A stretch of DNA of 64,000 nt from Macrostomum lignano. Lineage: Eukaryota. Under the pieces are notes generated by a model. The model was not told where the DNA came from and made no database searches. It saw nothing but the letters and a program-made list of their open reading frames with translations. This document shows, in pieces, positions 995 to 50,100 of this stretch. The position numbers and the translations under genes were made by a program. The DNA is taken from positions 248,001 through 312,000 of the forward strand of contig NIVC01001001.1 in assembly GCA_002269645.1 (NCBI GenBank), written 5' to 3'. Each line of letters opens with the position of its first letter. Within the stretch, counting starts at the first letter, position 1.

Positions 995-3900
995 ATTAGG
1001 CATTTCTTGGGACAAGCGTGTATAAACTGACCCGTGCTATTAGGACCAAAAATGTGTTGGGCCAGGCCCAATAAGTGCGTCCTGACACTTCCAAAAATGA
1101 ATTCTATTGAAATGAAAAAATATTCATTGGAACCGTCTTTCGATTCTCCTTTCAAAAATCAATGTGATTTTTTCATATTTTTAATCAAACACGGGGAATC
1201 TAATGATTTGCAGTGTCCTAAGAAGTTTAAAAAATTATGCGAACTGATGGTCTGATCCAACAGAACAATTGGGTCTCAAATCGGAGTTCTCGTTTTATTA
1301 CAATATTTCTTACAATATCAAGAAAGTCTACTACAAGTAACAGATAGAGGTTCTCCACAGGGCTGCCAATCGACACTTGAAAGGATCCTGACATTTGGCA
1401 TCGTGTTTACTATAAAATATGAAATAATTTAATAAAGATTTAGAATATTACAATCAAGCATACAAACCTTATAGATTTAGTATATTTAGATTTTTGCATA
1501 GAAACAGCTTGCATCTAAATTCATTAGCTTCCAATTTCACTTATACACGAAACATGGCAAATTAAGGTTACATCCGCCTGTGCCCTCGGCCATTTTAACT
1601 GAAATTCTCGTTTTCAGTCAGCTGCATTAATCTATTTGTCATATGTGAATGGGTATTAACTGACTCAAGTTAGTGACTGGAGGCCATTAACGTAAAGTGA
1701 CACTTTGAGTGAGGTAGTTTTCCGGTGGAAATTCTCACAGTCTTATGAAGCGCTTTTAGAGCAAAGAAATAAAGGGCAAAGAAAAACTTTGCATTTCCCG
1801 AGAAAACCGAGGACGAGTATTAGAGGGAAACGTTTAATCTCTAAGGCTTTAAATGACTTCCTTATTGGCCTGGGTTTGGGCAGCTATACTATGTAGCAAA
1901 ATTTTTCCTAGAATTATGATAATTATCGTCTGGTATACTGAAATGTACTGAGATACCAAGAAACTTAAGATGACTGCATGGACTACTGCTAGCACATGTT
2001 TGCGTGTCACTGTCACTGTAAAGTCGAAATCGATGACTAGTTTGGCCCAAAACTAACTACTAGGCCTTCCTGAAAAACAATTCTGCTTATCTTGGATCGT
2101 AAAGATAAACCCACGTACAGTGCAGAAGTGTTAGGACAAGCGTGTACAAGACCCAGGCAATCCCTTACCCAGGCCACGCGTACATTCCTATCGCGGCGGG
2201 GGGAAGCGGGGAGGAGAGGCGGGCGCAAGGGAGTCGGGATAAAGTTTACACTGAAGTTGAGGCCTACAAGAGGAAGAGCCAATTCTAACGGAAAGGTACA
2301 TGTAGAAGTTCCCTTTGACAAACGGCGTACTGGCGGTACTGCATATGTTCAAACGAATATAATTCATTTACGAGACCTGCACTACACAGACAAAATGTGC
2401 CACGTCACAAGAGTTTCCATGCATGACCTGGCATGAAAAGATTTGGCTAGGAACCATTACACATATGTAAGTAGAATTTAAAATTCTTTTTAAAATTTTA
2501 TGATTAAATAAAAACTTAACTGGAATTTACATATGTAACTTTTCTAAAATTCCAGATACGTTGATATCGATAAGCTACCGTTTTCTTCTATAACAAACAG
2601 ATTTGCCTTCATTGTCAAGTAAGTCTTGTCTCGTACTCGTATATGTCGTATTTTTTGTACGTTGAAAAAAATAATAAGCAGCCTAGTAATACTCTGAGCT
2701 CAGTGAAATATAAGAGAGGCGGCACGATCACCTTATTTATCAATTAATTTACAACAGCCAGTTGAGCAATCATAAGTAGGCAAAATTTACACTTCTAGGA
2801 AGAACAAATTTTACTAAAAGTTTCAATCAAAACATTTAGGAAAGAAATCTCGCATGACACATCGCCCACAGTACTAGAGACTTGGAGAAATACCATGTGA
2901 GTTTGCTGGGCAACTAATATAATATATTACTGTTATAATTCGATAGTCAAATTATTTTTCTACTCAAAGCAGTATTATTACATAACTAAAGAACAGTATA
3001 AAATGACAGCATTCTAGAACGAGAAACAAAGCTTACTGCAAAGGCAAACGCCGAAAGAAAAGCAGGGCAGAGTCAGCAACAAAAAAGAAGCTCATCTGAT
3101 TGGGAAGATGGGCGGTCAGCAAAGAGATAGGATCTCAGAAAATTGCAACTCCCAGTAACTGAAACTTAATTGCAATAAGTGTTTTGTTTTCTAGGGCATT
3201 ATTAAAACAAGCAAGCCTGCCTGCAGTCAGCTAAGGGCAAAGTAAGTTGCTGCGGCACTATCGAGAGAGTAAAATTTGTACATACTCCATCTGACTCACA
3301 CAAGCAGCACCGTTGGGACAAACTACGAGTATTTTAATTGTACAGTAAAATTTCATTGACAATGAAGCATTTATTAGAAAAGCGACATTTAAATCTGTTT
3401 TCAAACAAATCAGACAGATTTCTCAATAAGTGATTTTTCTTATGTGCGCCCACGCACAGGTTCGTCCGCATTCAAACTCGCCGCTGCATCCGTCATTTAT
3501 TTCACTTGCTGCTCACAAGCCGCAGCAGCAGCAGCAGCAGCAGCCGCTATCCGTGCAGGCAGTCAGTCTATTTGTGAATTTTCTGGTGGATCTGAAGAAA
3601 ACCCGTCCGGCACAGGATTAAAGAGAAAGAGACGATCTGTTTTGGGTGAGTATTATCTGCTGTAGAAGTATTGTACACCAGAGTACTTGTGTTACTTGGT
3701 AGAGCACAATTCAAAAGCTATGCAACAATCTCAGTGGCATTGTTGGGACACAAGCTACAAACGCAATGAATAGTAAACACAGCCCAGCCTAGCTCAAGGC
3801 TAGTAATTTGTTGGGCATTTATTGGGACATTGCAGCCAGGCCTATTTTTTGAACAGCATTTGTTGGGTCGCACTTATTGGGACAATACTGATTCTAATCG

Positions 3901-4154
3901 CGACTACTTCTGAGTTCTGACTTTTCAAAACAGACCCAGCATTAGTTGAACACGTTCTATTAAAGGGTTCCTTTATAGCCTATTAATGATTACTAAAGGC
4001 AAGCCTATCTTAATTGATTTCTTTTCCTCGCAGATTCTGAAGTCAGCAACGCCAGCGACATGCCTAAGAGACAAGAATGCGCTTTAACGATCAGCAGTGA
4101 GCATTCTGATCTCGCCGCTGCATCCGTCATTTGGTTCACTTGCTGCTGCAAGCC

Positions 4155-4226
<72 letters not shown>

Positions 4227-4836
4227 GCTATCCGTGCAGGCAGTCAGTCTATTTGTGAATTTTCTGGTGGATCTGAAGAAAACCCGTCCGGCACAGGATT
4301 AAAGAGAAAGAGACGATCTGTTTTGGGTGAGTATTATCTGCTGTAGAAGTATTGTACACCAGAGTACTTGTGTTACTTGGTAGAGCACAATTCAAAAGCA
4401 ATGCAACAATCTCAGTGGCATTGTTGGGACACAAGCTACAAACGCAATGAATAGTAAACACAGCCCAGCCTAGCTCAAGGCTAGTAATTTGTTGGGCATT
4501 TATTGGGACATTGCAGCCAGGCCTATTTTTTGAACAGCATTTGTTGGGTCGCACTTATTGGGACAATACTGATTCTAATCGCGACTACTTCTGAGTTCTG
4601 ACTTTTCAAAACAGACCCAGCATTAGTTGAACACGTTCTATTAAAGGGTTCCTTTATAGCCTATTAATGATTACTAAAGGCAAGCCTATCTTAATTGATT
4701 TCTTTTCCTCGCAGATTCTGAAGTCAGCAACGCCAGCGACATGCCTAAGAGACAAGAATGCGCTTTAACGATCAGCAGCGAGCATTCTGATCTCGCCGCT
4801 GCATCCGTCATTTGGTTCACTTGCTGCTCACAAGCC

Positions 4837-4917
<81 letters not shown>

Positions 4918-5526
4918 CTATCCGTGCAGGCAGTCAGTCTATTTGTGAATTTTCTGGTGGATCTGAAGAAAACCCGTCCGGCACAGGATTAAAGAGAAAG
5001 AGACGATCTGTTTTGGGTGAGTATTATCTGCTGTAGAAGTATTGTACACCAGAGTACTTGTGTTACTTGGTAGAGCACAATTCAAAAGCAATGCAACAAT
5101 CTCAGTGGCATTGTTGGGACACAAGCTACAAACGCAATGAATAGTAAACACAGCCCAGCCTAGCTCAAGGCTAGTAATTTGTTGGGCATTTATTGGGACA
5201 TTGCAGCCAGGCCTATTTTTTGAACAGCATTTGTTGGGTCGCACTTATTGGGACAATACTGATTCTAATCGCGACTACTTCTGAGTTCTGACTTTTCAAA
5301 ACAGACCCAGCATTAGTTGAACACGTTCTATTAAAGGGTTCCTTTATAGCCTATTAATGATTACTAAAGGCAAGCCTATCTTAATTGATTTCTTTTCCTC
5401 GCAGATTCTGAAGTCAGCAACGCCAGCGACATGCCTAAGAGACAAGAATGCGCTTTAACGATCAGCAGTGAGCATTCTGATCTCGCCGCTGCATCCGTCA
5501 TTTGGTTCACTTGCTGCTGCCAAGCC

Positions 5527-5565
<39 letters not shown>

Positions 5566-6175
5566 GCTATCCGTGCAGGCAGTCAGTCTATTTGTGAATT
5601 TTCTGGTGGATCTGAAGAAAACCCGTCCGGCACAGGATTAAAGAGAAAGAGACGATCTGTTTTGGGTGAGTATTATCTGCTGTAGAAGTATTGTACACCA
5701 GAGTACTTGTGTTACTTGGTAGAGCACAATTCAAAAGCAATGCAACAATCTCAGTGGCATTGTTGGGACACAAGCTACAAACGCAATGAATAGTAAACAC
5801 AGCCCAGCCTAGCTCAAGGCTAGTAATTTGTTGGGCATTTATTGGGACATTGCAGCCAGGCCTATTTTTTGAACAGCATTTGTTGGGTCGCACTTATTGG
5901 GACAATACTGATTCTAATCGCGACTACTTCTGAGTTCTGACTTTTCAAAACAGACCCAGCATTAGTTGAACACGTTCTATTAAAGGGTTCCTTTATAGCC
6001 TATTAATGATTACTAAAGGCAAGCCTATCTTAATTGATTTCTTTTCCTCGCAGATTCTGAAGTCAGCAACGCCAGCGACATGCCTAAGAGACAAGAATGC
6101 GCTTTAACGATCAGCAGTGAGCATTCTGATCTCGCCGCTGCATCCGTCATTTGGTTCACTTGCTGCTGCCAAGCC

Positions 6176-6237
<62 letters not shown>

Positions 6238-6238
<1 letters not shown>

Positions 6239-6330
6239 GGGACAAGAAGGCGCCCTCCTAGAGAACATCATGGGGTCCCCGGAAGTCCAAGGAGAGACCG
6301 AACGGCCAAACCTTGGAACTAACTGCCTTC
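6238..6330 (+). ncRNA. HDV-like self-cleaving ribozyme at the E1 5' end (enlarged L3)
   Basis: P1 GGGGAC/GTCCCC; P2 GAAGGCG/TGCCTTC; P3 CCC/GGG; L3 starts TCC and pairs with GG 6281-6282 (P1.1); P4 TCCAAGG/CCTTGGA; J4/2 CTAA with C6319. Confidence 0.75.
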
Positions 6331-9300
6331 CCAAACAGCGATGCCCCGCAGGGGGCGAGAGACTAAAACACGGCAGTGGAGATATCGATCACGACGTCAG
6401 AAATACCGATAACATCGACACAGTCCTTCGACTCCGCGGAGGGTGCGGTATAGCCCCCCGCAGCAAGCGGAGTGGTAGCGGGAAGAACGGCGAGGACCAC
6501 AGCCCAGAGCTCATCCTGCAATTCAATTGCAACGGCCTTCGGGCCCGTTCCACCGAGCTGGCCAAGTGGCTCCAGACTAATCGACCTGCAGCTATTCTGC
6601 TTCAAGAGACAAAACTCCGGACGGGACAAGTTTTTAACCCGCCGGACGGATACTGCGTGGCCGCTAGGTGCGACGGCCTCCCCAAGGACGCAGCCCAGCG
6701 GGGACAGGAGCCAGATGAGAGACCATCCGAAAGCAGCGCTCCCTCGGACACATGTCCGACGCCTTGGACAAGGTGTGGAGGACGTCGCCTTACTAGACCA
6801 CGATGCCGGATGCGCTGGCCGGAGGACCGCACCGAATGGTGCCCTGGATGCAAATCGGGCCGCACCGGTTGCGTTCGCAGGAACGAGCCATGGCCAACAC
6901 CGAGTCTGAATCAGGCGGATATCACAGTGATAGCAACAGAAGACGCAGGAACACACGCACCTGCACCTACGGCAGCGGCTGATGCAGCCGGGGCGACAAC
7001 GATTACAACACAAGGGGCTAGCTTGGCACCTCCTAAGAAAACAGGCTGGCAGTGCTGCAAGTGCGGCAACCAAATTAAAGGACGGCAGTATTCGGTCCGA
7101 TGCAACGGCTGCAACGACTGGTGTCACCTATCGTGTAGCGGCCTGGGCCGTAGCAACAGGTGGACAAGTGCTTTCAAAGCGGAAATGTGCAACTCCTGTA
7201 CACCTGTCCAACCGCCGCCATCACAGCCACCGGCAGAACGGAGCCCATCACCGTCATCACCGACACCACCATCACCGATACCGATACCAACAAATAAGAC
7301 TCGGAAAAACCCGATCAATCACGCGGCCCGCGGCGGGGCGATGATTCTCACCCGCTCGGACATTGCCGTTGACAACATACCGACGCCAGGAGATAAGGAA
7401 CGCGGCATGCTGGACGTCGCCGCAGCCGCCATCCACCTCAAAGACTCAAAGCCCATCACGCTCGTTTCTGTCTACGCACCACCTATCAGCGACCAGAGAG
7501 GCGAGACCTGGCACCCCCCCCTCAATCTCATTCCGGACGCCCAGCGCGTCATCATAGGGGGCGACTTTAACGCTCACGGGATTTGGGACAGCCACCAAGA
7601 GGAAGATGACAGAGGCCGCAGGGTGGAAGCTTGGGCCAGCGCAAGGAACCTGCGACTCGCTAACGGCGAGCGACACACCCGCACCAACCCGGCGACAGGC
7701 GCTTTATCCTCGCCGGATATCACCTGGACTAGCACCAATCTGCTGAGCAGCGTCGCGGACAGCTGGACAACTCAGAGTGACATGGGCTCGGATCATCTTC
7801 CCATCACGTTCCAGCTTTGCTCCGCTCACAAGCGCCCGACCAGGCAGAGGCGCCCTAGGACTGCAAAGTGGAGCTACCGAAAGGCGGACTGGAGTGGTTT
7901 TAAACAGGAGCTCGCCACCATCGATGCCGAAAGGGAACAATACCCGACGGAAGGTGTCGAGGCCGAGCACCTCCACGCCCTTATCTGCGACGACATCCTG
8001 AAGGCGGCGAGCCATAACATCCCTAAAGGGGCTCTCCCGAGGACCAAACCCTTCTGGAGCGAGGAGTGCGAGAAGGCCACCCAGGCCTGCAAAGAGGCGC
8101 GCCGGACAGCTGAAACTGAACCGTCCGAACCCAACATTGCAGCCTTCAAAATGGCCAGAAACCGAGTTCGGTCCACCATTCGCAAGGAAAAGGAAAAAGC
8201 CTGGAACGAGAAGGCGGCTCAGCTAGACGTTAACAGTGACCTCTTCCGCCTGCTGAAGAACATGAGGGGGGACGGGCACACCCCCGCCAGCAGTACATCT
8301 ATTACCAGGCACCAAACGGGTGGTACCGCGCCCAGCAGACCAGCGCGAACTAAACTGGAAAAAGCGAACCTGTTCTGCCAGATGTACAGCGCGGTCTCCA
8401 GAGTACCAAAACGCCCAGAAGACAGACTGATCAACAAAAAGGCCTATGAAGCGGCCAGTGCCCGCTGTTGCGATGCCGACAATCGCCAGGGAATCTGCCA
8501 GCCCTTCAACCCCACGGAGTACCGGAACGCCGTCCGAGCCCTGAAATCTGGAAAGGCACCCGGACAGGACGGAGTCAGTAATGATATGCTGAAACACTTA
8601 CCACCGTCCACTGACAAAAGACTCCTGGAGCTCATTAACAGGTCATGGATGGGAGGCAAGTGCCCATGGCAGTGGAGAAAGGCTACCATTATCCCGATTC
8701 CCAAGAAAGGGAAGGACGCCAGCAAGCCGGAATCATATCGCCCAATCGCCCTAACCAGCTGCGTGGCTAAGCTCGCAGAGCGCATGGTCCTCCAGCGCCT
8801 CCGTTACGCCCTGGAGGCCTCGGGTCGGCTGACCGCCAGCCAGGCGGGCTTCCGACGGGGGCGTTCCACTGAGGAGCTCATTGCCGACATCTCCCAGGAG
8901 ATTTTCGACAAGCTCGAGGCCACCCCGCACATCAGGTCAGTGCTCTGCCTGCTTGATTTTAGCCGCGCTTACGACAGAGTCTGGAGGGCGGCTCTCTACT
9001 CGAAGCTGCGAGACTTGGGAGTGCCAGCCGACGTCATCCGGTGGATCAAGGCCTTCCTGTCAGACCGAAGAGCCCGCGTGCGCGTCGGCGACTGCACCAG
9101 CAAAGAACGCATCTTCCGGGAAGGACTACCACAGGGGTCGGTGCTCGCCCCCACACTGTGGTTAGTCTACGTCAACGATCTGGCTGATGCGGTGCTAAAC
9201 GCCGCCGCGGGTGTTTCCATCAAACTTTATGCCGATGACAGCGCCCTCCTGACCTCTAACAGGTCTCTGGACACATGTGAAGAGAAGCTGCAACCCGCGC

Positions 9301-11047
9301 TGAACGCCGTCTCACAGTGGTGCAAGGAATGGAAAGTGGAGCTCAGCGTGGAAAAGAGCGTGTACGGCACTTTCACGCTGGACGCAAAGGAATCAAACGG
9401 CAAAAAGAGACTCAACCTGCTCATCGATGACAAGCCAATAGCCTTTGACCCAGCCCCGAACTACCTCGGTGTTCGCCTAGACGGTCAACTCAATTTCGCG
9501 CAGCACGCCGCGACAGTCCGCGCCAAGATGTGCGCCAGACGCCGACCGCTCGCAGCGATGGCCGGCAGGAGCACCGGAGCTGATCTACAAACGATCCGAA
9601 CAGCCTACATCAGTACCGTCCGCGCTGTGGCCGAGTACGCCGCAGGTACCTGGCTATGCGGCGCCGCCCCCTCCACCAGACGAGCTATTGAACAGCAGCA
9701 GAACGCGTGCGCGAGACTGATTACGGGATGTATCATGCCGACCAACATCCGCTCAGTCCTACAACTGGCCGGGCTCACACCGCTCTCATTCATCGCGTCC
9801 GAGAGGGCGGCACGCCTAAGGGAAAGAGTCCTCAGACTCGACCCGAGTGTCTCGGCGGGACAAGTAGCCTTGCGGAACACCAGGCCTAGACTGAAAAACC
9901 GTACCTACGAAGCTTTGGCACGCGATCACGGCCGCACCCACGGAGACGGCGGCGCCGACGACGAAGCACAGCCGAACTCGCTGAACCTCATCGACCCGCG
10001 GGACGCCACCCGCCCCTTCCGGAACTGCTGGAGGAGGGCGGCACTGGAGCTGCCGTCGGTTGCCATATTGGATTCCCACAAAAGAGGCGACCCGGTAAGC
10101 CCCGGCATCCCGCCGTGGGAGTGCGACACACGGGACATTAACATCCGCCTGGACATCTCGGCCCGATGCCGCCGCACGGACCCCCAGGAGTCCCGGAGCG
10201 CGGCGGCAACGGAGTTTCTGCAGTCACTGCCTGAGGCTGACATCAGCGTGTGGACAGACGGATCGGTGGCGGACGGCACCGGACCCGGCGGCAGCGCCGC
10301 TATAACCTGCACGAACTTGGCGAGCCATGTGCGCAAGGCCCCGGCCGGAATCATCTGTAGCTCATTTGACGCAGAAATGATAGCCATCCGCGAAGCACTG
10401 GTTTTTATTAAGAACAACCGCAGCCCGAGCGAAAAGAAGATTCGCCTATGTAGCGACTCTTTATCGTCACTGACAGCACTAGGGGCCGGACCACTAGCCC
10501 AGGCGACTAAGACCGGTACGGACTGCTGGCGCCACATGCTAGACATCAACGAAACGGCCGACATAGAACTAATCTGGGTGCCAGCCCACTGCGGCATCAG
10601 CCTTAATGAAGCGGCGGACCGCGCGGCCGGCATGGCAAGAGGCTTGCCCCAAGAGGAAGTGCCCATCTCCTTCAACGCCGCAAAAGCAGCCATTCGCCGC
10701 GATCGCCGGACCCTGGAGAAAGAAACCCTGCCGCAACCCTGGCCGGACTTCAAAGCGAGAGACCGGCGGGAGCAAACGGCGGTGTGCCAGCTTCGCGCAG
10801 GCATGACGATGCTCTGCGCCGAGACCCAGCACCGATTCGGTATGATCGATAATCCGCAGTGCCCGGACTGCGGAGAACTCGACGACAGCGCCCATGCGCT
10901 ACTTCACTGCCACCGGGAGACGCTCGACGGATGGCCCTGGTCGGGAACGATCACGAGGAGCTCCTCCGGAACCCGGGAAAATGTCTCTCGCTCCTTCGGA
11001 GCATGGGGCGATGGCCCCCGCAAATCTCGGCGCCGCCGCGCCGGTAA
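6270..11047 (+). CDS. E1 single-ORF polyprotein (MGSPEV...; leader-VLRLRGG-APE with Cys-rich/PHD insert-RT-RNaseH-Zn knuckle), one frameshift near 10908
   Basis: ATG at 6270 is homologous to the E2 ATG at 37386. The true C-terminus (LLRSMGRWPPQISAPPRR*, TAA 11045-11047) is in another frame and matches the E2 C-terminus. Confidence 0.85.
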
Positions 11048-11721
11048 AGCGAGCGCTGAAGACGAAGAAGAAGAAGAAGAAGAAGAAGAAGCAGCAGCAG
11101 CAGCAGCAGCCGCTATCCGTGCAGGCAGTCAGTCTATTTGTGAATTTTCTGGTGGATCTGAAGAAAACCCGTCCGGCACAGGATTAAAGAGAAAGAGACG
11201 ATCTGTTTTGGGTGAGTATTATCTGCTGTAGAAGTATTGTACACCAGAGTACTTGTGTTACTTGGTAGAGCACAATTCAAAAGCTATGCAACAATCTCAG
11301 TGGCATTGTTGGGACACAAGCTACAAACGCAATGAATAGTAAACACAGCCCAGCCTAGCTCAAGGCTAGTAATTTGTTGGGCATTTATTGGGACATTGCA
11401 GCCAGGCCTATTTTTTGAACAGCATTTGTTGGGTCGCACTTATTGGGACAATACTGATTCTAATCGCGACTACTTCTGAGTTCTGACTTTTCAAAACAGA
11501 CCCAGCATTAGTTGAACACGTTCTATTAAAGGGTTCCTTTATAGCCTATTAATGATTACTAAAGGCAAGCCTATCTTAATTGATTTCTTTTCCTCGCAGA
11601 TTCTGAAGTCAGCAACGCCAGCGACATGCCTAAGAGACAAGAATGCGCTTTAACGATCAGCAGTGAGCATTCTGATCTCGCCGCTGCATCCGTCATTTGG
11701 TTCACTTGCTGCTGCCAAGCC

Positions 11722-11784
<63 letters not shown>

Positions 11785-12393
11785 CTATCCGTGCAGGCAG
11801 TCAGTCTATTTGTGAATTTTCTGGTGGATCTGAAGAAAACCCGTCCGGCACAGGATTAAAGAGAAAGAGACGATCTGTTTTGGGTGAGTATTATCTGCTG
11901 TAGAAGTATTGTACACCAGAGTACTTGTGTTACTTGGTAGAGCACAATTCAAAAGCAATGCAACAATCTCAGTGGCATTGTTGGGACACAAGCTACAAAC
12001 GCAATGAATAGTAAACACAGCCCAGCCTAGCTCAAGGCTAGTAATTTGTTGGGCATTTATTGGGACATTGCAGCCAGGCCTATTTTTTGAACAGCATTTG
12101 TTGGGTCGCACTTATTGGGACAATACTGATTCTAATCGCGACTACTTCTGAGTTCTGACTTTTCAAAACAGACCCAGCATTAGTTGAACACGTTCTATTA
12201 AAGGGTTCCTTTATAGCCTATTAATGATTACTAAAGGCAAGCCTATCTTAATTGATTTCTTTTCCTCGCAGATTCTGAAGTCAGCAACGCCAGCGACATG
12301 CCTAAGAGACAAGAATGCGCTTTAACGATCAGCAGCGAGCATTCTGATCTCGCCGCTGCATCCGTCATTTGGTTCACTTGCTGCTCACAAGCC

Positions 12394-17119: not shown

Positions 17120-21620
<4,501 letters not shown>

Positions 21621-37073: not shown

Positions 37074-37185
37074 CACCCCCTGGGATTTACTCCCAGCCTG
37101 CTGGGTAATCAGCAGGCCCTATCCGGCGCCGCGTCTTTGTCGCGGGGGGGAGGCAACGCCCGTTCTTCGGGCGGCGAAGAGCGCC
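37074..37185 (+). ncRNA. HDV-like ribozyme of element A
   Basis: P1 CACCCCC/GGGGGGG (one A-G mismatch); two hairpins in J1/2; P2 GGCGC(C)/(GA)GCGCC; P3 GCG/CGC; L3 TCTTTGT; P1.1 AG pairs CT; GCAA; P4 CGCCCG/CGGGCG; J4/2 GCGAA with C37175. Confidence 0.8.
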
Positions 37186-37335: not shown

Positions 37336-37353
37336 AGCAGCAGCACCCGCCGG

Positions 37354-37443
37354 GGGGACAAGAAGGCACCCTCCTAGCGAACACCATGGGGTCCCCGGAC
37401 GCCCCCGGTCCGCGCAACAGGACCGAGGCGACTAATGGCCTTC
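37354..37443 (+). ncRNA. HDV-like ribozyme of E2
   Basis: P1 GGGGAC/GTCCCC starts exactly at the TSD-defined 5' end. P2 GAAGGC/GCCTTC; P3 CCC/GGG; P4 CGCC..GGTCC/GGACC..GGCG; J4/2 CTAA with C37432. Confidence 0.78.
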
Positions 37444-38832
37444 ACAATCAGCGATGCTCCATATGGAGCGAGAGAGCCAATACTGCGTGCATGGAGACCG
37501 AACCTCAGCAACAACAACAACAAGGGCAACAGATCTCGACGACGCCCCCCATGCTGAGAGCCTACCTACTGAACAAGTCCTGCGACTGCGAGGCGGTTGC
37601 GACCATCCTGACCGCCGACCCAAGCACGGCCGCCGGAGGAATACCGCGGAGCCGGGCCCAGAGCTCATCCTACAGTTCAACTGTAACGGCGTCAAGAGCC
37701 GCCATACTGAGCTGGCTAAATGGCTCCACGTCAATCGTCCGGCTGCGGTCCTACTGCAGGAAACGAAGCTTGCCAGCGACACCGATTACATCCCTCCTAC
37801 CGGATACTACGTCGCCGCGCGCTGCGACGGCCTTCCTAAAGAGGCCGCCGGCACCCGGGCCACCGAGAACGAGGAAGGGGGGGCACCTCTCCAGCCCACC
37901 CAACCCAGTGGCCCCGAAGCTAACCCTAACGAAGGGACCAGCGCGGACAACTGCCCCACGCCATGGGCAAACTGCGGCCGCAAGATTAAGCGCCCACGCT
38001 GCCGCATCCGTTGGCCGGCTGACAAGAATGATAAGGCGGAGTGGTGCCGCGGCTGCCGCTCAGGCAGAACCGCCTGCACCCGCAGAGACGAGCCGTGGCC
38101 ACAACCACCGCAACCGCAGCCACAGGCCCAGACCCAGAGTGCGCAACACAATCGTGAGCCGACCGACAACCAACAGGAGCAGGCACGGAGGACCGCCGCC
38201 TCGAAGCCGCCAATAACTCGGCCCAAGAACAGGACGAACAAAGCGACCCACACCAGAGGAGGCACCCTGATCCTAGTGCGCGCCGACATTGCGTCCGACA
38301 CTACGCCATCGCCGCCGGACAACGAACGCCAACTGCTAGACTGCGCCACCGCCACCATCCACCTCAAAGGCCAGGAGCCGATCACGCTGGTTTCCCTCTA
38401 CGCACCACCGACCAGCAACCAACGGGGGGAAACCTGGCAACCCCCGCTTCATCTGGTCCCGAACGCCGCTGGCCCTACCGTCGTCGCCGGCGACTTCAAC
38501 GCCCACGGCAGTTGGGACCGGCACCAAGACGAAGATGAGCGCGGCAAAATAGTGGAAGCCTGGGCGACCTCCCGCAACCTGAGACTTGCAAACGGCGACT
38601 ACCATACGCGAACTAACCCAGCAACAGGAGGCAAATCTACTCCGGACCTTACCTGGACCAGCAACAACCTCCTGCAAGGCATCGCAGAGAGCTGGACGAC
38701 CCTCGACGATCTGGGGTCCGACCATCTGCCCATCTCCTTCCCGGTCCAGAGACACCCCAGAGCGCCGCGGAAGGGCAAGAACCTGCCACGGGCCACGTGG
38801 TGCTTCCGCAAAGCGGACTGGGGGAGCTTTAA

Positions 38833-40899
38833 CCTCTTCCTGACGAATTGAAAACATGTCATCTCAATTGCGAACGGGTGGCCTGCATCGCAGGCCATAG
38901 AAAAATTTCCAAGTTTTGTGAACTTCTGATCTCCTCACTTAAAGACGGATGACCTGCTATGCAGGCCATGGCTGCAGGCAACAACGATATTGTCTATGGG
39001 CGTGTTTGTACTTAGTGTCACAGCTCCTGACTGAAAAAAATTGTACTGGAGTTCTCACTGCATTGACAGGTTAAATAGTTTTAAAGTTATGTCATAGACA
39101 GTTGGTTTGACTGTCCACTACTAAAGACCTGGAGACTTATGACTTCTCATGAATGTGGTTATGAAAGTCACTGTAAAAAAACCTAGCATAAGACTTTGGA
39201 TTTTGTAACAATTGGCATACAGAATACGAGCAGTTATACATGGAATCACTCAACGAAGAACCCGATTTTGAGCAGTTGATGTCTGATGACGAGGATCAAG
39301 ATTCCACTACTGACTCGTCCGATGAGGCTTCCGATCTAGACAATGCATCCGTGGATGAAGAAATAGGTGGCTGGCAACGCGTCGTACCCGGAGAGAATGG
39401 TTTGCAGGAGCCAGATTCGGAATTCATGGCGACCTCTGGCTTGCATCCGGATTTGGTGGCGCCAGCTGATCCAGACAACAATATTCAATGGTTTTTTGAC
39501 CTATTTTTAACTGACGCGCTGATGAACAAGCTGTGCGAGTGGACCAACAAGAAAGCTTGGTTTGAGTTAGAAAGGTTTCAAGCTGAAGGAGGTGAGCCAG
39601 CTGAGGTGCCACCAATCTTGAAGACTTGGAAGAATTGCACATTGAACGAGATCAGGAAGGTGATAGCGACCAACTTTTTCATGGGGCTGAGCAAGAAGCC
39701 GGAATTGCACCTTTACTGGTCTACGGACCCGTTCGACCAGTGCCCTTTCATGCAGCAACCTTCAAGCCTGTCAAGAGATCGATATAAACAAATCATGCAC
39801 TTCCTGCGCTTCTACGACTGCACCGCAATCGCAGACTTGAACGACCCTCTAAGAAAGATTCGACCGTTTCTTAGAATTGTGCAGCAGGCAATGCAGAATA
39901 CTTATTTGCCAGAGCAGAACATCTGCATTGACGAATCCCTAGTGTTGTACAAAGGACGCCTGATTTTTCGTCAGTACATACCAAGCAAGCGAAACAAGTT
40001 TGGCATCAAAATGTACTGTCTATGTGAATCCCAGACAGGGTACATGTGAAACTTTTTAATTCACAGTACGGATGCGGAAAACGGAAAATTTGGACAAGGG
40101 CTGGAGTGTGACCACCTTTCTATCAGCGAGCGCATTGTGGTTGAGTTAAGCAGCCAGATTTTAAACCTTGGCTACCACCTGTTCACGGACAGCTGGTTTT
40201 CTTCGGCTCGACTGGCCGAGTTCCTGCTGTCTAAATCCACATTTCTGACGGGCACAGTTCGACAAGATCGCGGGATCCCCGACTGTCTACGGCAGCTGGC
40301 TCTTCCTGCCAACTCATGTGCATTTGCTCGAAAAGAGGGCCTGCTTGCTGTGAAGCTTGTTGATCGAAAGCAAAGTGGAGTTAAGACGGTTAACTTCATC
40401 GACACCAGGAGCATTGCTGGTACCGCCGAGATCACCCGAATTCGACGTGGCGGTCAGCAAGAGGTGGTAACAAAGCCGATTACAGCTGTTGTTTACTCAT
40501 TTCTGTTGAAACCTCTGCGTACTCGTATTTTAATAAATTTGTAAAGTTCTTCTTGTTGAAACCGCGGGTACTTTTTGCTATTTGTCAGATTAAAAAGTAA
40601 AAAATATTTCCTTTAATAACGGTTTGTTCTCTTCCATAAATAAAATTATCTTGAACCACAGCGTAGTACCGTGTCTTTGCTTCTGTTGAATTAGCGGATG
40701 GCCTGCCATGCAGGTCATCAGTCCTTAACTGCAGTGCCACACAGATATCTATGGTCAATCGTTCGGCTCAGCAGAATTAGCCGTCTGGAATAGTGAGCTA
40801 GAGTTGACATTAATTTACCCACAGACTGCACGGCATAAAAAACCGTTTTGAGTGGAAAGGCTCTATGGCCTGCTATGCAGGCCATCCGTCGGGTTACTG
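38833..40899 (+). mobile_element. piggyBac-superfamily DNA transposon nested in E2
   Basis: TTAA at 38829-38832 and 40900-40903. Excision restores the E2 frame ADWGSF|KDELTKID (E1: ADWSGFKQELATID). Inverted subterminal palindromic motifs at both ends. Confidence 0.9.
39240..40544 (+). pseudogene. piggyBac (PGBD4-like) transposase, premature stop and 3' truncation
   Basis: CIDESL, YIPSKRNKFGIK, FTDSWF, GTVR motifs. TGA at 40047-40049 where Trp is expected, with the frame continuing. The third catalytic GGVD motif is absent. Confidence 0.85.
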
Positions 40900-43800: not shown

Positions 43801-44053
43801 GGTCCGACACCGTTTCGGCCTGACGGACTCCCCGCTCTGCCAGGACTGCGGGGCACCGGACTCGAGCCTGCACGCGATCTACAGCTGCCCGAGGGGGGAC
43901 GCGCATCGCACTCGCCTGGTCAGCACTGAAGTGGAGCGCCTCCTTACCGAACCGGGCTTGGCCCTCTCGCTCCTCCGGAGCATGGGGCGTTGGCCCCCGT
44001 CTATTTCGGCGCCGCCGCGCCGCTGACGAGCGCTGAAGAAGAAAGAAAGAAAG

Positions 44054-44160
44054 CACCCGCCGGCCTTTACTGCCGACCTGGAGAAGCTTCTCCAGGCCCT
44101 AATAGGCGCCGCGTCTTCGTCGCGGGGGGAGGTGTCCCTATGGGATATCAAAGAGCGCCT
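44054..44160 (+). ncRNA. HDV-like ribozyme of E3
   Basis: Same architecture as element A, with compensatory changes in both J1/2 hairpins and P4 (GTGTCCC/GGGATAT). L3 TCTTCGT; J4/2 CAAA with C44149; P2 AGGCGC/GCGCCT. P1 pairing is imperfect in this copy. Confidence 0.7.
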
Positions 44161-47100
44161 ACACCTCGGACACCCTGTGTCCCATCGGCTAGAAGAAGTT
44201 TGTGTCAACGGAAGCTGCAGCCCGCCGATGCTTCCCGTCGGTCGAGGGTGGCAGTTGGGCCCACCACCTTCCCAAGCTGCGCTTAATCAGGGCCGGCGAC
44301 ATCGAAACCAACCCAGGACCCCCCCCCCGTCGCACTGTGGCAAGGCCTGCTGCGGCAAGCCGCTCCGCGACAGGGCGCTGGTCTGTCGGCAATGCAACCG
44401 CGGTTTTCATCTCCAAAGAATCTGCTCTGGGTTGAGCCGTTGGGCCTCGGACCGCGCTGTGCGCGAGAACACCTGGACTTGTTCTGACTGCTCACGTGGG
44501 CCAGTCTCATCCTCAGAGCCGCCGGGACAAGACACCGAGGCCACTGCTCAGCAAGGCACTCCCGACCAGGCGGAGTCACCGGCCGAGGATCGGAGACTCA
44601 CACTGCTTGCGAGGATTAAAGAAGAAAAGCCTAACTGCGCCAAGTGCAAGAAGACCATCCGGGTGTCGACGGTGATTTCCTGCTGTAACACCTGTGAGGC
44701 CTTTTTCCACAACGCATGCACCGAAGCCACCAGAGAACAGATCAAGCAAGAAGTCCGCAGGGGCCGCTAGCGGTGTCGTTTCTGTACCGAAGCCCTCACT
44801 ACCGGTGGAGCTACGCACTCCTCGCCAGAAGCCGACCCCACGGCCCAAAGCGAGACGCACCGAAGACGGAAATAAGGACCTGCCGATAACAAGGGCCTCA
44901 AGGTCCTGCAATGGAATGCGGACGGCATCCGTAACAAAATGGGAGAACTGGAGGAGCTGGTCCAACGCCTCAAAGTTGATGTCGTCATGATCCAAGAATC
45001 TAAGCTTGACTCCGTCTCCCGCACGCCAAAGATCCCCGGCTTTACCACCGTGAGAAAAGACCGACGAACTCTACGTTCCAGCGAGACGTCCAAGGGAGGA
45101 GGTCTCCTCACGCTCATCCGCCAAGAAATCCCCTTCCGGCGGCTCAAAGGCTGGAGTGGGGACACGGTGGAAGGCTGCCGCATCGTGATCAACCTTAGTG
45201 CCAAACAGCGTCTCGTGCTCACCAACATTTACCGGCCGTCCATCAGGCGCAATGCTGGCGCCGACTGCCGGGAGCACCCGGACATCGATCTCTGGCTGAA
45301 GCCGCACCAGCGCGAGATTATTGCTGGCGACTTTAATCTCCATCACACGACCTGGGGTAGTCTGCCTGGCCAGGGGCCCGAGGGCGCCGAACAAGCCAAA
45401 GCCCTGCTGGAGTGGTGTGACAGTAATGGGTATTGTGTCCTCAACTCGGGCTCCCTCACCTGTCTCGATCGCCGCGACGGTGGAGAGAGTGCCCCCGACA
45501 TCAGCCTCGCTAGCGCCGGCCTCGACGACCTCTGCTCGTGGGAGGCCCTTGACGAACTGGGCTCCGACCACAAACTCATTCTCATCACAGTGGATGGCGA
45601 CCGCGCTAGCACCGACCAGAAGATTTGTCTCGCCTGGGCCTGGCAGAAAGCTGACTGGAACAGCTACCAGGCCCAGCTCGAAGACGATAGCTATGGGCTC
45701 AACAAAGGCACTGTCAAGCAGCAAATCCAACGCCTCTGCTTTCGTATGAGTAAGGCGGCCAAAGCTTGCATTCCCATGAAGCGCGTCTCCTCCAAAAACA
45801 AGCCCTACTGGGATTCGGAGCTCTCTAGTCTTCGGGACGAAAGAAACAGACTCAGATCCCGTGGCGGTGACCCGGACGAGTGGAAGCGCCAGAATGCCGT
45901 GGTCAACAGGGCCTGCGCAGAGAAAAAAGCCGCCTTCTGGCAGGAATTTGTTCAGGACCTGTCTTATTCCTCAGACGTCAAAAAAGTGTGGCGTACCATT
46001 AAAACCCTAAGTGCTGGAGAGCAACCGACCGCGAAGAACGAAATCCTAGTGGCGGACGATAAGGAGTGCAGCTCGGATCGCGACAAAGCAAATGCTTTTG
46101 GTCAACACTACGCCAAGATCAGCACCCTCAAGCACGACGCCACTGACCGCGCCTTCAAAGTTAGCACCGCAAAGCGTTTGAATAAGTATCCCACAGGGAC
46201 CTCCGAGCACGATTGCGCCCTCACCATGGGAGAACTCAAACGAGTCATCTCACACCTCGACGTCACCAAAAAAGCCGGCCCCGACGGCATCGAAGCGGCT
46301 TTCTTCAGACACCTGCCGGACTCGTGGCTCACGGCCTGGCTCACGGTCTTTAATCGGTGCTGGTCCCTAGGGCACTGCCCGGGAGTCTGGAAGAAGGCGG
46401 TGATCGTCCCACTTTTGAAAGAGGGCAAAGACCCAGCCAACTGCAGCAGCTTCCGGCCTGTTAGTCTCACTTCCATCTGTGTTAAAACCATGGAGCGCAT
46501 TGTGATGGACCGGCTCATGCACTGGATCGAACTCAACAACACGCTGCAACCGTGGCAAGCTGGTTTTCAGAGAGAGCGTAGCTGCGAAGAGCAAGTGGCG
46601 CGTCTGGTCCAGGAAATCCAAGACCACTGGGAACAACGCCCGCCTCGCAAAACGATTGCTGTCACCCTTGACTGCTCCCGCGCCTTCGACCGGGTCTGGC
46701 GAACCCGCCTCCTTGTCCGTCTCATGGATGAGGGAGTCCCGGGTCGCATGGTGCACTGGTTTGCCAGCTTCCTGGAGGGGCGCCAGATTGCCGTCCGCGT
46801 GGGCGATACGATTGGCAAATGGAGGCCGCTTAAGGAGGGGGTGCCGCAGGAGGCTGTGTGCTCGCCGGTGCTCTTCCTCCTGTACATCAACGACTGGGCG
46901 GACTCCCTGGTCCCAGATGTCAACTACGCCGGCTTTGCTGACGACCTGGGCGTCTGGGCCTCGGGCAGCAACATCCAGCAGATTGCGGAGCGCCTCCAAC
47001 TGGCCATCGATCGCATCGACGCCTGGGCCACTGATCTCCGTATCGATCTCAATCCCCTCAAAACTGAATGCTGTATCTTCTCGAGAGACTGCAGGGACCG

Positions 47101-50100
47101 CGACCGTACCCTCAACCTGTGCATCCGAGGCCAGCAACTCCCAACCAGGCAGGAGCTGCGCTACCTGGGTGTCTGGATCGACAGCGGCCTGCTCTTCAAG
47201 CGGCAGTCCGACGAAGTTGCCGCCAAACTGCGCCGTCGTTGTGCTGTCCTGCGTGCACTATCGCATCGCGAATGGGGGTGGGACCGCGCCACGCTTAGGA
47301 CGGTGTATAAAGCCGTGGTGGAGTCTGTGGTTTGGGATGCGGCTGCAGCCTGGATGCCCTGGCTCTCCCAGACTCGCCTTAATGACCTGGACAGAGCCCA
47401 AAAAGTCGCTCTGAGACTTGTCTCCGGTCTACCAAGCTCGACTCCCAGCGTGGCCATCTACCGTGAGGCCGATTGTGTGCCCATCAGCCTGGAGGCCAAG
47501 CGACGAGCGCTGGTCGCCGTCGAAAAGGCGCTCCGGCGGCCCGAGGCGGACCCCTGGAGGTCCAGGTGTGAACTCAGGACCCCCACCCGGCTCAAAGCCA
47601 ACCGTGGCCTCCGCGAACAAGCCCACTCAGTGCTCAACGAAATCCTGCCGCACAGCCGTCTCCCGGGAGCCTGGGTCAGAGCCCCGCCGTGGGACACGCT
47701 CAGCGGCTCGAACCAGCTGAGGCTCTATCCACAACTGGTGAGACCGCTCCGTAAATCCGACAGTCAGCACACCCGCGATCCGATCATCGCCGACACCTTC
47801 CGAGAACGCCTGCCCAGTACCTGCTACTTCACGGACGGCTCCGCTTCGGGTGGCACCGCCAACGGCGGCGCCGCCTGGATCCTGTTTGACCAGGAGACGG
47901 GCACGGTCATCCGGGGCGGCCACTCTCCAGCGGGCAGATGGTGCAGCTCCTTCGAAACCGAGCTCCGCGCGCTCCGGGATGCTGTCGTGGATGTCATTCA
48001 GCAGGACATTGGCACCGCCGCCCTCCTCACCGATAGCCAGGCGGCCGTCAGAGCGCTGATAGCCGACCGACCCACCACTAACGCGTTACTCGAAGACCTA
48101 AAGGCTCTTCTTCGGCAAGCAGCTGGCCGTTGCGTTCTCACGATCCAGTCGATTCCCGGCCATGCTGGCGTGGCTGGTAATGAGTTCGTCGATCGCGAGG
48201 CCAAAGCCGCAGCTCTTCTGGAACAAGCCCAAGTGGCCATCTCGCTCGAAGCAGCCAAGCAGTTTATCTACCGCCGGCTCGAATACCTTCCGGACCTGAC
48301 CGGCCATCTGAAGGAGACTTACCAAGGACGCATCACGCACCATAACGGCAGCCGGCGAGAGCAAGTCCTCGTTGCGCAGGTGAGAGCTGGACACTGCCCC
48401 TCCTCGGCCTATTACGCTAAGCGCATCGGCAAAGCTCAGCTGGCCGAGTGCAGGCTTTGCGGGCTCGAGGTAGACCAATTCCACCTGGTCCACTGCCCTG
48501 CGACCGATGTCGCCCGAAGACAGAACAGCATTTGCGATCTGAAAGACCTAGCCGATGGGAACCTGGTGGCGCGGCTCCTGGTGTGGATCGATTGGATCCC
48601 GCTCTAGACGGCTGCACTCCGCACTCAACAACAACAACAGCAGCAGCAGTCACAGCCTCCGGCCGCAAAGAGGGGACGACAGCTAGGTGAGTCTTGCAAG
48701 TCTGTGTAGAAATTTCTTTTTCATCTTTATCTTTTACGAAACTCTAAATTCGGGATTATTGAAAAAAGATAGGGCTATTCTCTGTATGTAAAAAGTGCTT
48801 TTTCATCTTTGGCATTCATTTGGCTTTCGCAAACTCAAAATCAGGCTTATTGAAATAATATATAGGCCCCACTGTAAAACTGCTTTTCACCCTTCGCATT
48901 CAGAGTTGCTTTCGCAAACTCTAAATTCAGCTTATTGAAATTCGGATTCGGACTTCGGACTGTCTGTCGCAGATTGAAATAAAGGGAGGAAACTGCTTTT
49001 GGTTCAGCATTCATTTGTATTCGTGTGATTTACAAACTCTAAATTCACGCTTATTGAAAAAATCGATCACACACTTACCGACAGACCATTTTTAGGATAT
49101 TGGATTTGGCTTAAAATTTCTGAATTCAGGCTGTAGCTACTCCTGCCATCGATATCGTATTGAAGTAAATGGAGGAAACTGCTTTTGCTTTAGATTTATT
49201 TGGATTTCTCAATTCAGGCCTATTGAAATATCAGAGTTTTGGAGAATATCCGCAGTATAGAAATTGTATAGTTGGGTAATGCCTGTAAAGGATAGTCATA
49301 AAATTCCAGGGGCTGTATGACTAATCCTTGAACTAGAGAGGAGCGGGCGGGCAGGTTTTCTGGCAGTGATAAAATCAACCCCGATTTTTGGGCTCAGCAT
49401 GATGATGTAATCACCGCTGCATTGATAGTAGGGGTTTGGCGGCAATAAAACTTGGTTGCTACAGTGAGGGTTATTAATCAGACATTTATGACAGCTTTAA
49501 AAATCCAAAAGCGGCCGCGTGGTATTGTTGCTAGGTGTCAAGGAGGGGTACGAAGCAATGGAGACACGTGCCGATTGTGGGTTTTCTTAAATTTTACAAT
49601 GGCTGCTGCTGCAGGATCTGTGTTATCAGAGGATCATCAATCAAACATTTTGACAGCCTAAAATTCGAAGCGGGGTCAATCAACCCCACATTACTTTTGT
49701 TGCTGCGTGTTGGAACGTGCCGAGTTTTACAACTCGCCGATTTTTGTTGCTTGGGGGTGGAGCGATAAAATTGCTGCTGCAGCAGGGCAATAAATCAAAA
49801 ATTTTTGACAGTTTTAAAAATTCGAAGCGGTCAGAATTTTAGTCGCCATGCACATTTTAATTGCAGATTTGGCTCAATTTCAACCCCCGCCCCAGCCCGA
49901 CACTGTCGAAGGCGATGGTAAGGAGTTGATTTTATTTCATGAGTCATTCACCCGCCGCCGCCGCCTCTCGCAATTCTAATTTCAAACCCTCAATTTTTTC
50001 AGGCTTCATTGCGCGTCTTGGCGGGGCGAAAGCCCTGCCTAAATTTAGAGCCGCAGGGTATGAGTATGTGGTATCACTCACCGCAGCAGCTGCAGCAGCA

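Follow-up and report, generated by a model that had tools for sequence, protein, structure and literature searches.

A conserved ubiquitin C-terminal heptapeptide ahead of the endonuclease domain in LINEs of Macrostomum lignano

In the 64,000-nucleotide stretch of the Macrostomum lignano genome analysed here (assembly GCA_002269645.1, contig NIVC01001001.1, positions 248,001 to 312,000 of the forward strand; hereafter the window, numbered from its first letter), two related long interspersed nuclear elements (LINEs), E1 and E2, encode the peptide VLRLRGG between a short leader and the apurinic/apyrimidinic endonuclease (APE) domain. The peptide equals ubiquitin residues 70-76 in E1, in E2 and in a third copy on another contig (7/7 residues identical, including the C-terminal Gly-Gly). 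What does the end of ubiquitin do in a retrotransposon, and where did it come from? A first-pass annotation of the window had proposed that it is a mimic of the ubiquitin tail, located where a relative, E3, carries a 2A peptide, and that host deubiquitinases use it to remove the leader.

The heptapeptide in three copies and the 2A position

The motif of E1 is found at 6423-6446 (+ strand), where GTC CTT CGA CTC CGC GGA GGG TGC encodes VLRLRGGC, and that of E2 at 37577-37600 (+), where GTC CTG CGA CTG CGA GGC GGT TGC encodes the same eight residues. Synonymous differences were observed at 5/7 motif codons and no other differences within the motif, and the leader residues directly upstream of VLRLRGG are unalike in the two elements. 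After the Gly-Gly, a basic linker of 22 residues with Cys as its first residue extends to ELILQFNCNG, the first strand of the APE domain, in both E1 and E2. The motif with its Cys, the synonymous codons, the unlike leader residues and a spacing of about 20 residues between motif and APE domain had been described in the first-pass annotation and were confirmed. The start Met, which it had placed about 50-65 residues upstream of the motif, is at that distance in E1 (51 codons from the ATG at 6270) but not in E2 (41 codons from the ATG at 37454). Calculated from how often each amino acid occurs in the six-frame translation, the expectation for VLRLRGG in the window is 0.0013; 2 were seen, which occupy homologous positions of two homologous elements.

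A HMMER search of 1.84 billion representative proteins with an E1+E2 profile returned 4137 matches, the best 150 of which are LINE APE domains. Only one of these 150, P0023, covers the leader, the first APE half and the Cys-rich insert specific to the family. It is encoded at locus L001 on contig NIVC01002647.1 of the same assembly and is referred to as the third copy, the more distant one. Its sequence reads ...DDNANLHRVLRLRGG|DSNVTASPRQTRSSKKRGRGHRSGSELQVLQFNCNG, with the motif (...ANLHRVLRLRGG|D) located 26 residues ahead of LQFNCNG. The motif codons are GTT CTC CGT CTA CGC GGA GGC, followed by GAC, which encodes Asp and not Cys. Thus, the invariance of LRLRGG|C that the first-pass annotation asked to be checked holds for LRLRGG in 3/3 copies, but the Cys is present in only 2/3. 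The third copy is positioned directly after a CAG/CAA repeat of a host polyglutamine/C2H2 gene and in frame with it, and the gene caller therefore fused the two; the copy is decayed, being truncated in the reverse transcriptase (RT) domain. A fourth family member (L014, the locus of P0018) is on a contig that begins exactly at FNCNG, and its leader is missing.

Pairwise comparison of the three motifs showed third-codon-position identities of 2/7, 2/7 and 0/7. In an alignment of all three sequences, and ahead of the conserved EL at which the APE domain opens, only the 7 motif positions, one Asp and one Arg do not vary; the leaders (51 residues in E1, 41 in E2 and about 81 in the third copy) are otherwise unalignable. 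All seven residues are invariant despite saturated synonymous sites, which argues for purifying selection on the peptide and not on the RNA. To judge from these codons, VLRLRGG is clearly under strong purifying selection at the protein level, and the conservation claimed from E1 and E2 is extended by the third copy to all 7 residues. A word-indexed protein search with the E1 N-terminus returned only distant LINEs of the 2A-PHD-APE type, and no match with the motif masked; the same kind of search with a three-sequence profile returned only APE fragments, one of them beginning with NPGP.

2A peptides occur in exactly the position of the ubiquitin tail in many LINE clades, being found at the ORF (open reading frame) N-terminus of L1Tc, Ingi, CR1, Crack, Rex1 and sea-urchin STR elements, with ubiquitin unmentioned (Odon et al. 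2013, PMC3708506). Among the 150 nearest relatives of E1 and E2, an NPGP 2A motif was found upstream of the APE domain in about 50, typically in the order 2A-PHD-APE, and it was also present in the word-indexed matches P0001, P0002, P0004 and P0163. A metagenome scan yielded 11 loci, of which 8 have a 2A motif upstream of the APE domain, 2 are cut off too soon and 0 have a ubiquitin tail. Relatives that share the Cys-rich APE insert have either a 2A motif (P0012) or a remnant of it (IEDNSGP in P0017); the locus of P0022, which was considered as a further candidate, contains a degenerate 2A remnant without a ubiquitin tail and was rejected. No NPGP was found in E1, E2 or P0023, and all six frames of the window contain a single NPGP, that of E3, at 44310. 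Tail and NPGP were never combined in the 150 nearest relatives or in the 11 metagenome loci, indicating that tail and 2A share one slot and are mutually exclusive in this sample, a point that the first-pass annotation had asked to be checked.

Origin of the tail and its candidate functions

E1 residues 22-51 (KQRCPAGGERLKHGSGDIDHDVRNTDNIDT) align without gaps and in exact register with ubiquitin 40-69. This pairing, with 6/30 identities, scores 26 under BLOSUM62, higher than any other of the 1320 ungapped 30-mer pairings; shuffling gave p = 1.5e-5 for the fixed register and p = 0.02 for the maximum over all registers, the test being post hoc. The third copy retains Leu67 and His68 of ubiquitin (LH.VLRLRGG). 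Val70 of ubiquitin lies outside the protease cleft, and its conservation together with the in-register match favours descent from a captured ubiquitin over convergence. The alignments are suggestive of a tail that is the remnant of a captured ubiquitin coding sequence, the N-terminal half of which would have been lost or overwritten and the C-terminal half decayed, with the tail retained. The capture could have resulted from a template switch at the 5' end in the course of reverse transcription. The label "mimic" in the first-pass annotation is probably wrong, given the register of E1 22-51 with ubiquitin 40-69 and Leu67/His68 in the third copy.

The function put first here, at slightly less than even confidence, is that of a proteolytic processing site: a host ubiquitin-specific protease would cut after the Gly-Gly of VLRLRGG and free the enzyme from its leader. 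The cut would release the APE-RT-RNase H protein with a defined N-terminus, whatever the translation start on a ribozyme-processed, uncapped RNA, and the part removed would consist of ribozyme-encoded residues, variable starts or host polyglutamine read-through. The same job is presumed for 2A peptides in related elements. No protease domain was found in E1, either in the whole protein (E <= 0.01) or in the four segments without a Pfam assignment (E <= 1). A broader proposal, in which the LINE family would have domesticated a ubiquitin fragment as a fold-less cassette that replaced 2A and that exposes a destabilising Cys or Asp keeping the enzyme short-lived, appears doubtful.

Several points count against cleavage by a host ubiquitin-specific protease and against the capture of ubiquitin that would underlie it. 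Deubiquitinases (ubiquitin-specific proteases and ubiquitin C-terminal hydrolases) bind the globular body of ubiquitin, and LRGG peptides without this body are cleaved at rates orders of magnitude below those of ubiquitin substrates. The ubiquitin fold is absent from the leaders, in which only the tail is intact and no complete ubiquitin moiety precedes the cargo. The Pfam ubiquitin family (PF00240) had no match in the E1, E2 or third-copy leaders at E <= 10, and the hydrophobic fraction (ILMFVWY) of the leaders is 0.16-0.17 (0.16 in E1) versus 0.30 for ubiquitin 1-69. An AlphaFold single-sequence model of E1 residues 1-117 gave a pLDDT (predicted local distance difference test) of 36, which is weak evidence and uninformative. 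In this respect the first-pass annotation, which had proposed cleavage without a ubiquitin fold, was right. Cleavage at a tail that sits on a disordered leader may be slow or may not happen, and partial or slow cleavage, or a role without cleavage, has to be considered because deubiquitinases cut LRGG peptides inefficiently.

As to descent, the in-register test was framed after a local alignment that was not significant (p = 0.08), and gapped alignments between the leaders and the ubiquitin body gave no significance (local p = 0.08-0.45, global p = 0.12-0.73). No in-register similarity to ubiquitin was found in the E2 leader, and no similarity in the ribozyme-encoded N-terminal part of the E1 leader. 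The third copy shows weak similarity in the last 10 residues only (2 identities, p = 0.016) and nothing over longer stretches. The family sample with a leader comprises three copies (n = 3), of which E1 and E2 are not mutually independent. Finally, the third copy has no fold resembling the ribozyme of hepatitis delta virus (HDV) by the same descriptor that E1 passed.

Could the tail be conserved for a role in which it is not cut? It might act as a short linear motif that binds a factor recognising ubiquitin tails, or as a modulator of stability or localisation within the ORF protein, which we consider unlikely. The binding partner, at a similarly low likelihood, would be the cleft of a deubiquitinase or, following a cut of another kind, a domain of the ZnF-UBP type. 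Conservation at the protein level would be expected of such a role as well, and by general enzymology a tail by itself is poorly cut by proteases. In addition, the basic linker of 22-26 residues resembles a nuclear localisation signal, so that the N-terminal extension may be functional as a whole. However, the exact 2A slot and the mutual exclusion with 2A argue for a separation function, and the part upstream of the motif is free in length and sequence, as for a discarded leader.

If a host ubiquitin-specific protease does cut at the motif, the residue exposed could be an Arg/N-degron by which the cassette sets the half-life of the protein. Cys and Asp at the N-terminus are destabilising through arginylation in the Arg/N-degron pathway, and the residue after the Gly-Gly is Cys in E1, Cys in E2 and Asp in the third copy, all of the arginylation-dependent destabilising type. 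The pattern is nevertheless not significant, with two independent lineages only and with 5/20 residues arginylation-dependent and 13/20 destabilising, and a degron of this kind is quite unlikely. The oxygen- and nitric oxide-dependent Cys degron suggested in the first-pass annotation does not hold as a family feature, because Cys is not invariant and is replaced by Asp in the third copy.

Cleavage at the motif by a different enzyme, either a protease of the element that has escaped recognition or a host protease unrelated to deubiquitinases, is judged very unlikely. Viral papain-like proteases are known to cut LXGG polyprotein sites without a ubiquitin fold, and much of the E1 ORF is without a Pfam assignment; but no E1 segment contains a protease domain even at the permissive threshold, the unassigned segments are the usual linkers of LINEs, and the identity to ubiquitin, reaching Val70 (and Leu67/His68 in the third copy), fits inheritance over a tailored site. 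A functionless relic or a coincidence is hardly credible, since two of the three known copies are indeed decayed (E2 and the RT-truncated third copy) but all 7/7 residues are invariant amid saturated synonymous sites and an unalignable flanking leader, and the expectation per window is far below one (0.0013).

Ribozyme-like 5' ends, element structure and surroundings

The positions of the features in E1, E2 and E3 are summarised in Table 1.

Table 1. Coordinates of features in E1, E2 and E3, in window positions.
Feature	Position	Strand	Remark
E1 candidate HDV-like ribozyme fold	6238..6330	+	directly after target (CAG)n; hand-written descriptor passed
E1 leader, 51 residues from ATG in L3/P3'	6270..6422	+	polar, few hydrophobics
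E1 leader residues 22-51, possible decayed remnant of ubiquitin 40-69	6333..6422	+	in-register alignment
E1 VLRLRGG	6423..6443	+	identity to ubiquitin 70-76
E1 Cys after GG (6444-6446) and 22-residue basic linker to APE	6444..6509	+	
E1 ORF remainder: split APE, RT, RNase H, C-terminal CCHC; (GAA)n tail	6510..11091	+	
E2 candidate HDV-like ribozyme fold	37354..37443	+	P1, P2, P3, P1.1 as in E1
E2 leader in motif frame, 41 residues	37454..37576	+	first in-frame ATG
E2 VLRLRGG and Cys	37577..37600	+	
E3 2A-type motif GDIETNPGP	44295..44321	+	upstream of PHD fingers and APE

The 5' ends of E1 and E2 can be drawn as a nested double pseudoknot of the HDV type, with the helices P1 (GGGGAC/GTCCCC), P2 (GAAGGC/GCCTTC, or GAAGGCG/TGCCTTC), P3 (CCC/GGG) and P1.1 (GG with CC of L3), and with a C in J4/2 after the P4 hairpin. 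The first 50 nt of the two elements are near-identical. P4 is wholly different in sequence (TCCAAGG/CCTTGGA in E1 versus CGCC.CGGTCC/GGACCG.GGCG in E2) but forms a hairpin in both and is fully covarying. No ribozyme family of Rfam was found in a gathering scan of the window or in a permissive scan of 6150-6500, which gave only spurious matches to CAG repeats, and the hand-written HDV descriptor is unspecific, with 7 unrelated matches elsewhere in the window. The ribozyme was called because of its position at the exact 5' junction and the covariation of P4. From its sequence, the predicted fold would release the element from host transcripts. The third copy starts with ATGTGGGACCGAACGG (L001 1900-1925), and its 10-mer GACCGAACGG is also found in the P4 loop of E1 (window 6297-6306); this copy may have been shortened from the 5' side to a point within the ribozyme.

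The in-frame ATG of E1 sits in L3/P3' of the ribozyme. The equivalent ATG of E2 (37386) is out of frame with the motif, and, traced upstream, the E2 motif frame meets a stop within the ribozyme, so the E2 leader is counted from the first in-frame ATG. The mismatch in E2 would most simply be explained by a frameshift in a dead copy. Hence the earlier statement that part of the leader is encoded by the ribozyme is true of E1, but in E2 the ribozyme ATG is in another frame. Just 3' of the ribozyme, CAGCGATGC is common to E1 (6341-6343) and E2 (37454-37456). The ATG within it is in the motif frame in E2 and opens only a 23-codon dead-end frame in E1; read in the E1 frame, CAGCGATGC encodes Gln-Arg-Cys, aligned with Gln41-Arg42 of ubiquitin.

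E1 contains an intact ORF of 1654 codons from the ATG at 6270, in which the Pfam domains Exo_endo_phos (APE), RVT_1 (RT) and RNase_H were all identified, and its 3' tail is the (GAA)n at about 11064-11091. The proteins of E1 and E2 share 54-62% identity, and E2 is a decayed copy with frameshifts and an insertion of a piggyBac-like transposase. It is preceded by (CAA)4(CAG)3, has a (GAA/GAAA)n tail at its 3' end and is flanked by a 10-bp target-site duplication, CACCCGCCGG, at 37345-37354 and 44054-44063. The features of an APE-type retrotransposon without long terminal repeats were thus found as APE, RT and RNase H in one ORF (E1), a target-site duplication (E2) and a simple-repeat 3' tail; the architecture, judged by domain layout, is I/Ingi-like. 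Exact look-ups of the E1, E3 and P0009 proteins retrieved no record.

E1 is inserted in a (CAG)n tract in one unit of a tandem repeat of ~650-690 bp, and the empty site is present in the neighbouring units. Each of the three copies is at or adjoins CAG/CAA-type repeats, a placement suggestive of target specificity. The small LINE family to which E1 and E2 belong, with APE, RT and RNase H, inserts at (CAG)n. In E1, E2 and the third copy, the frame in which CAG encodes Gln continues open into the element; the host exon of E1 seemingly uses another frame. The tandem repeat around E1 (3544-6237 and 11092-12000) consists of exon-like units with the acceptor ttttcctcgcag and the donor ttttgg|gtgagt, each unit with a (CAG)n tract and a KRKRR dibasic site. 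The E1 ORF has no in-frame stop ahead of (GAA)n and runs into the flank to 11231, and the sequence that it reads into is present in 6 repeat units (3549, 4230, 4917, 5569, 11115 and 11784). In E2 a TGA stop at 44024-44026 is located just ahead of the tail, and E1 and E2 differ there by a 2-nt indel.

In this family an insert of some 50 to 250 residues interrupts the APE domain after GY.VAAR.DG (E1 6660-7330, E2 37830-38330). The same insert was observed in the third copy (L001 2420-2640), in P0012, P0015, P0017, P0021 and P0022 and in L014. It contains a conserved Cys-rich motif, C..W..C..RPRCR.RWP...WC.GC.SGR..C, which is probably a zinc finger, and in E1 alone a PHD-like finger (WQCCKCGN...CNDWCHLSCSGL). 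An insert at this point of the APE domain is unusual and may be linked to (CAG)n targeting. The APE and RT parts of E2 are separated by the piggyBac-like transposase fragment (DDE_Tnp_1_7, E 2e-38) at 38851-40899, with an ORF at 39240-40049.

E3 (about 44030-48607) is ~29% identical to E1. The GDIETNPGP motif that the first-pass annotation had reported in it was verified, and is followed by PHD fingers and then by the APE domain. The 2A motif and two PHD fingers (44030-44995) are in different frames and stops precede the APE ORF, and E3 is therefore regarded as a decayed copy. A similar sequence, GGCGCCGCGTCTT.GTCGCGGGGGG.AGG, is found at 37119-37150, upstream of E2, and at 44097-44130, downstream of E2 at the start of E3, so E2 seemingly inserted into the 5' region of an element of the E3 family, or beside it.

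A partial match to the motif, SLRHRGGC at 20203, was rejected as a chance occurrence, and no E1-like sequence was found in its surroundings. The GC-rich block at 18684-21184 has long ORFs on each strand and, after them, an extended (ACC)n run read as polythreonine; Pfam gave no match to it, and it does not resemble E1.

Known systems and implications

Ubiquitin fusions cut by the host, 2A peptides and HDV-like ribozymes in LINEs are already known, and what appears to be new here is a conserved ubiquitin tail in a LINE. In the literature searched, with Repbase and Dfam outside its scope, no retrotransposon was found described as carrying a ubiquitin tail. The layout is like that of the ubiquitin fusion precursors (polyubiquitin, Ub-RPL40/UBA52, Ub-RPS27A and FUBI-RPS30), in which ...LRLRGG is likewise followed at once by the cargo, and deubiquitinases of the cell set the cargo free by cutting after Gly76. 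These precursors contain a complete folded ubiquitin of 76 residues, whereas in the E1 family the intact tail is preceded by at most a decayed C-terminal half.

Cytopathogenic pestiviruses have captured host ubiquitin, and host ubiquitin hydrolases create the N-terminus of their replication enzyme. A selfish element, a captured ubiquitin and a cut by a host hydrolase would also be combined in the LINE as proposed here, but the pestiviral inserts comprise at least one complete ubiquitin monomer acquired via viral RNA recombination, and the LINE contains a truncated remnant. The LXGG sites of viral papain-like proteases are likewise ubiquitin-tail-like polyprotein motifs without a ubiquitin fold upstream, cleavage being a property of the viral systems; these encode their own protease, which has deubiquitinase activity, and none was found in E1.

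The 2A (StopGo) peptides of LINEs resemble the tail in being a short signal that follows a leader (in some cases containing a PHD finger) and precedes the APE domain, and in being the presumed separator of the two. A study by Heras in 2006 reportedly placed 2A at the N-terminus of the ORF of an APE-type LINE, as relayed by Odon and colleagues. 2A acts co-translationally in the ribosome, without a protease and with the motif D(V/I)ExNPGP, in contrast to the tail of the E1 family, which would require a protease. HDV-like ribozymes are found at the 5' ends of site-specific LINEs (R2, some RTE elements and L1Tc), and the candidate 5' nested double pseudoknot of E1 and E2, which would free the element RNA from a host co-transcript and through which the ORF is open, would be of the same kind. 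The predicted fold of E1 and E2 differs from these in having no Rfam match and in its (CAG)n microsatellite target.

The translation start and the enzyme N-terminus of single-ORF LINEs that are co-transcribed with the host and released by a ribozyme are poorly understood. To our knowledge, 2A peptides are the only described way for such elements to obtain a defined enzyme N-terminus. If the tail is not cut, the strict conservation of a heptapeptide demands another explanation. If it is cut as proposed, the E1 family would provide a second solution in the 2A slot, post-translational and dependent on a host protease, as well as an example of the capture of a host gene by a LINE at its 5' end. 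Cleavage of a tail-only substrate in cells would revise the substrate requirements of deubiquitinases and provide a very short cleavage tag, and it would mean that cellular deubiquitinases process linear, tail-only substrates in vivo and that transposons exploit this activity.

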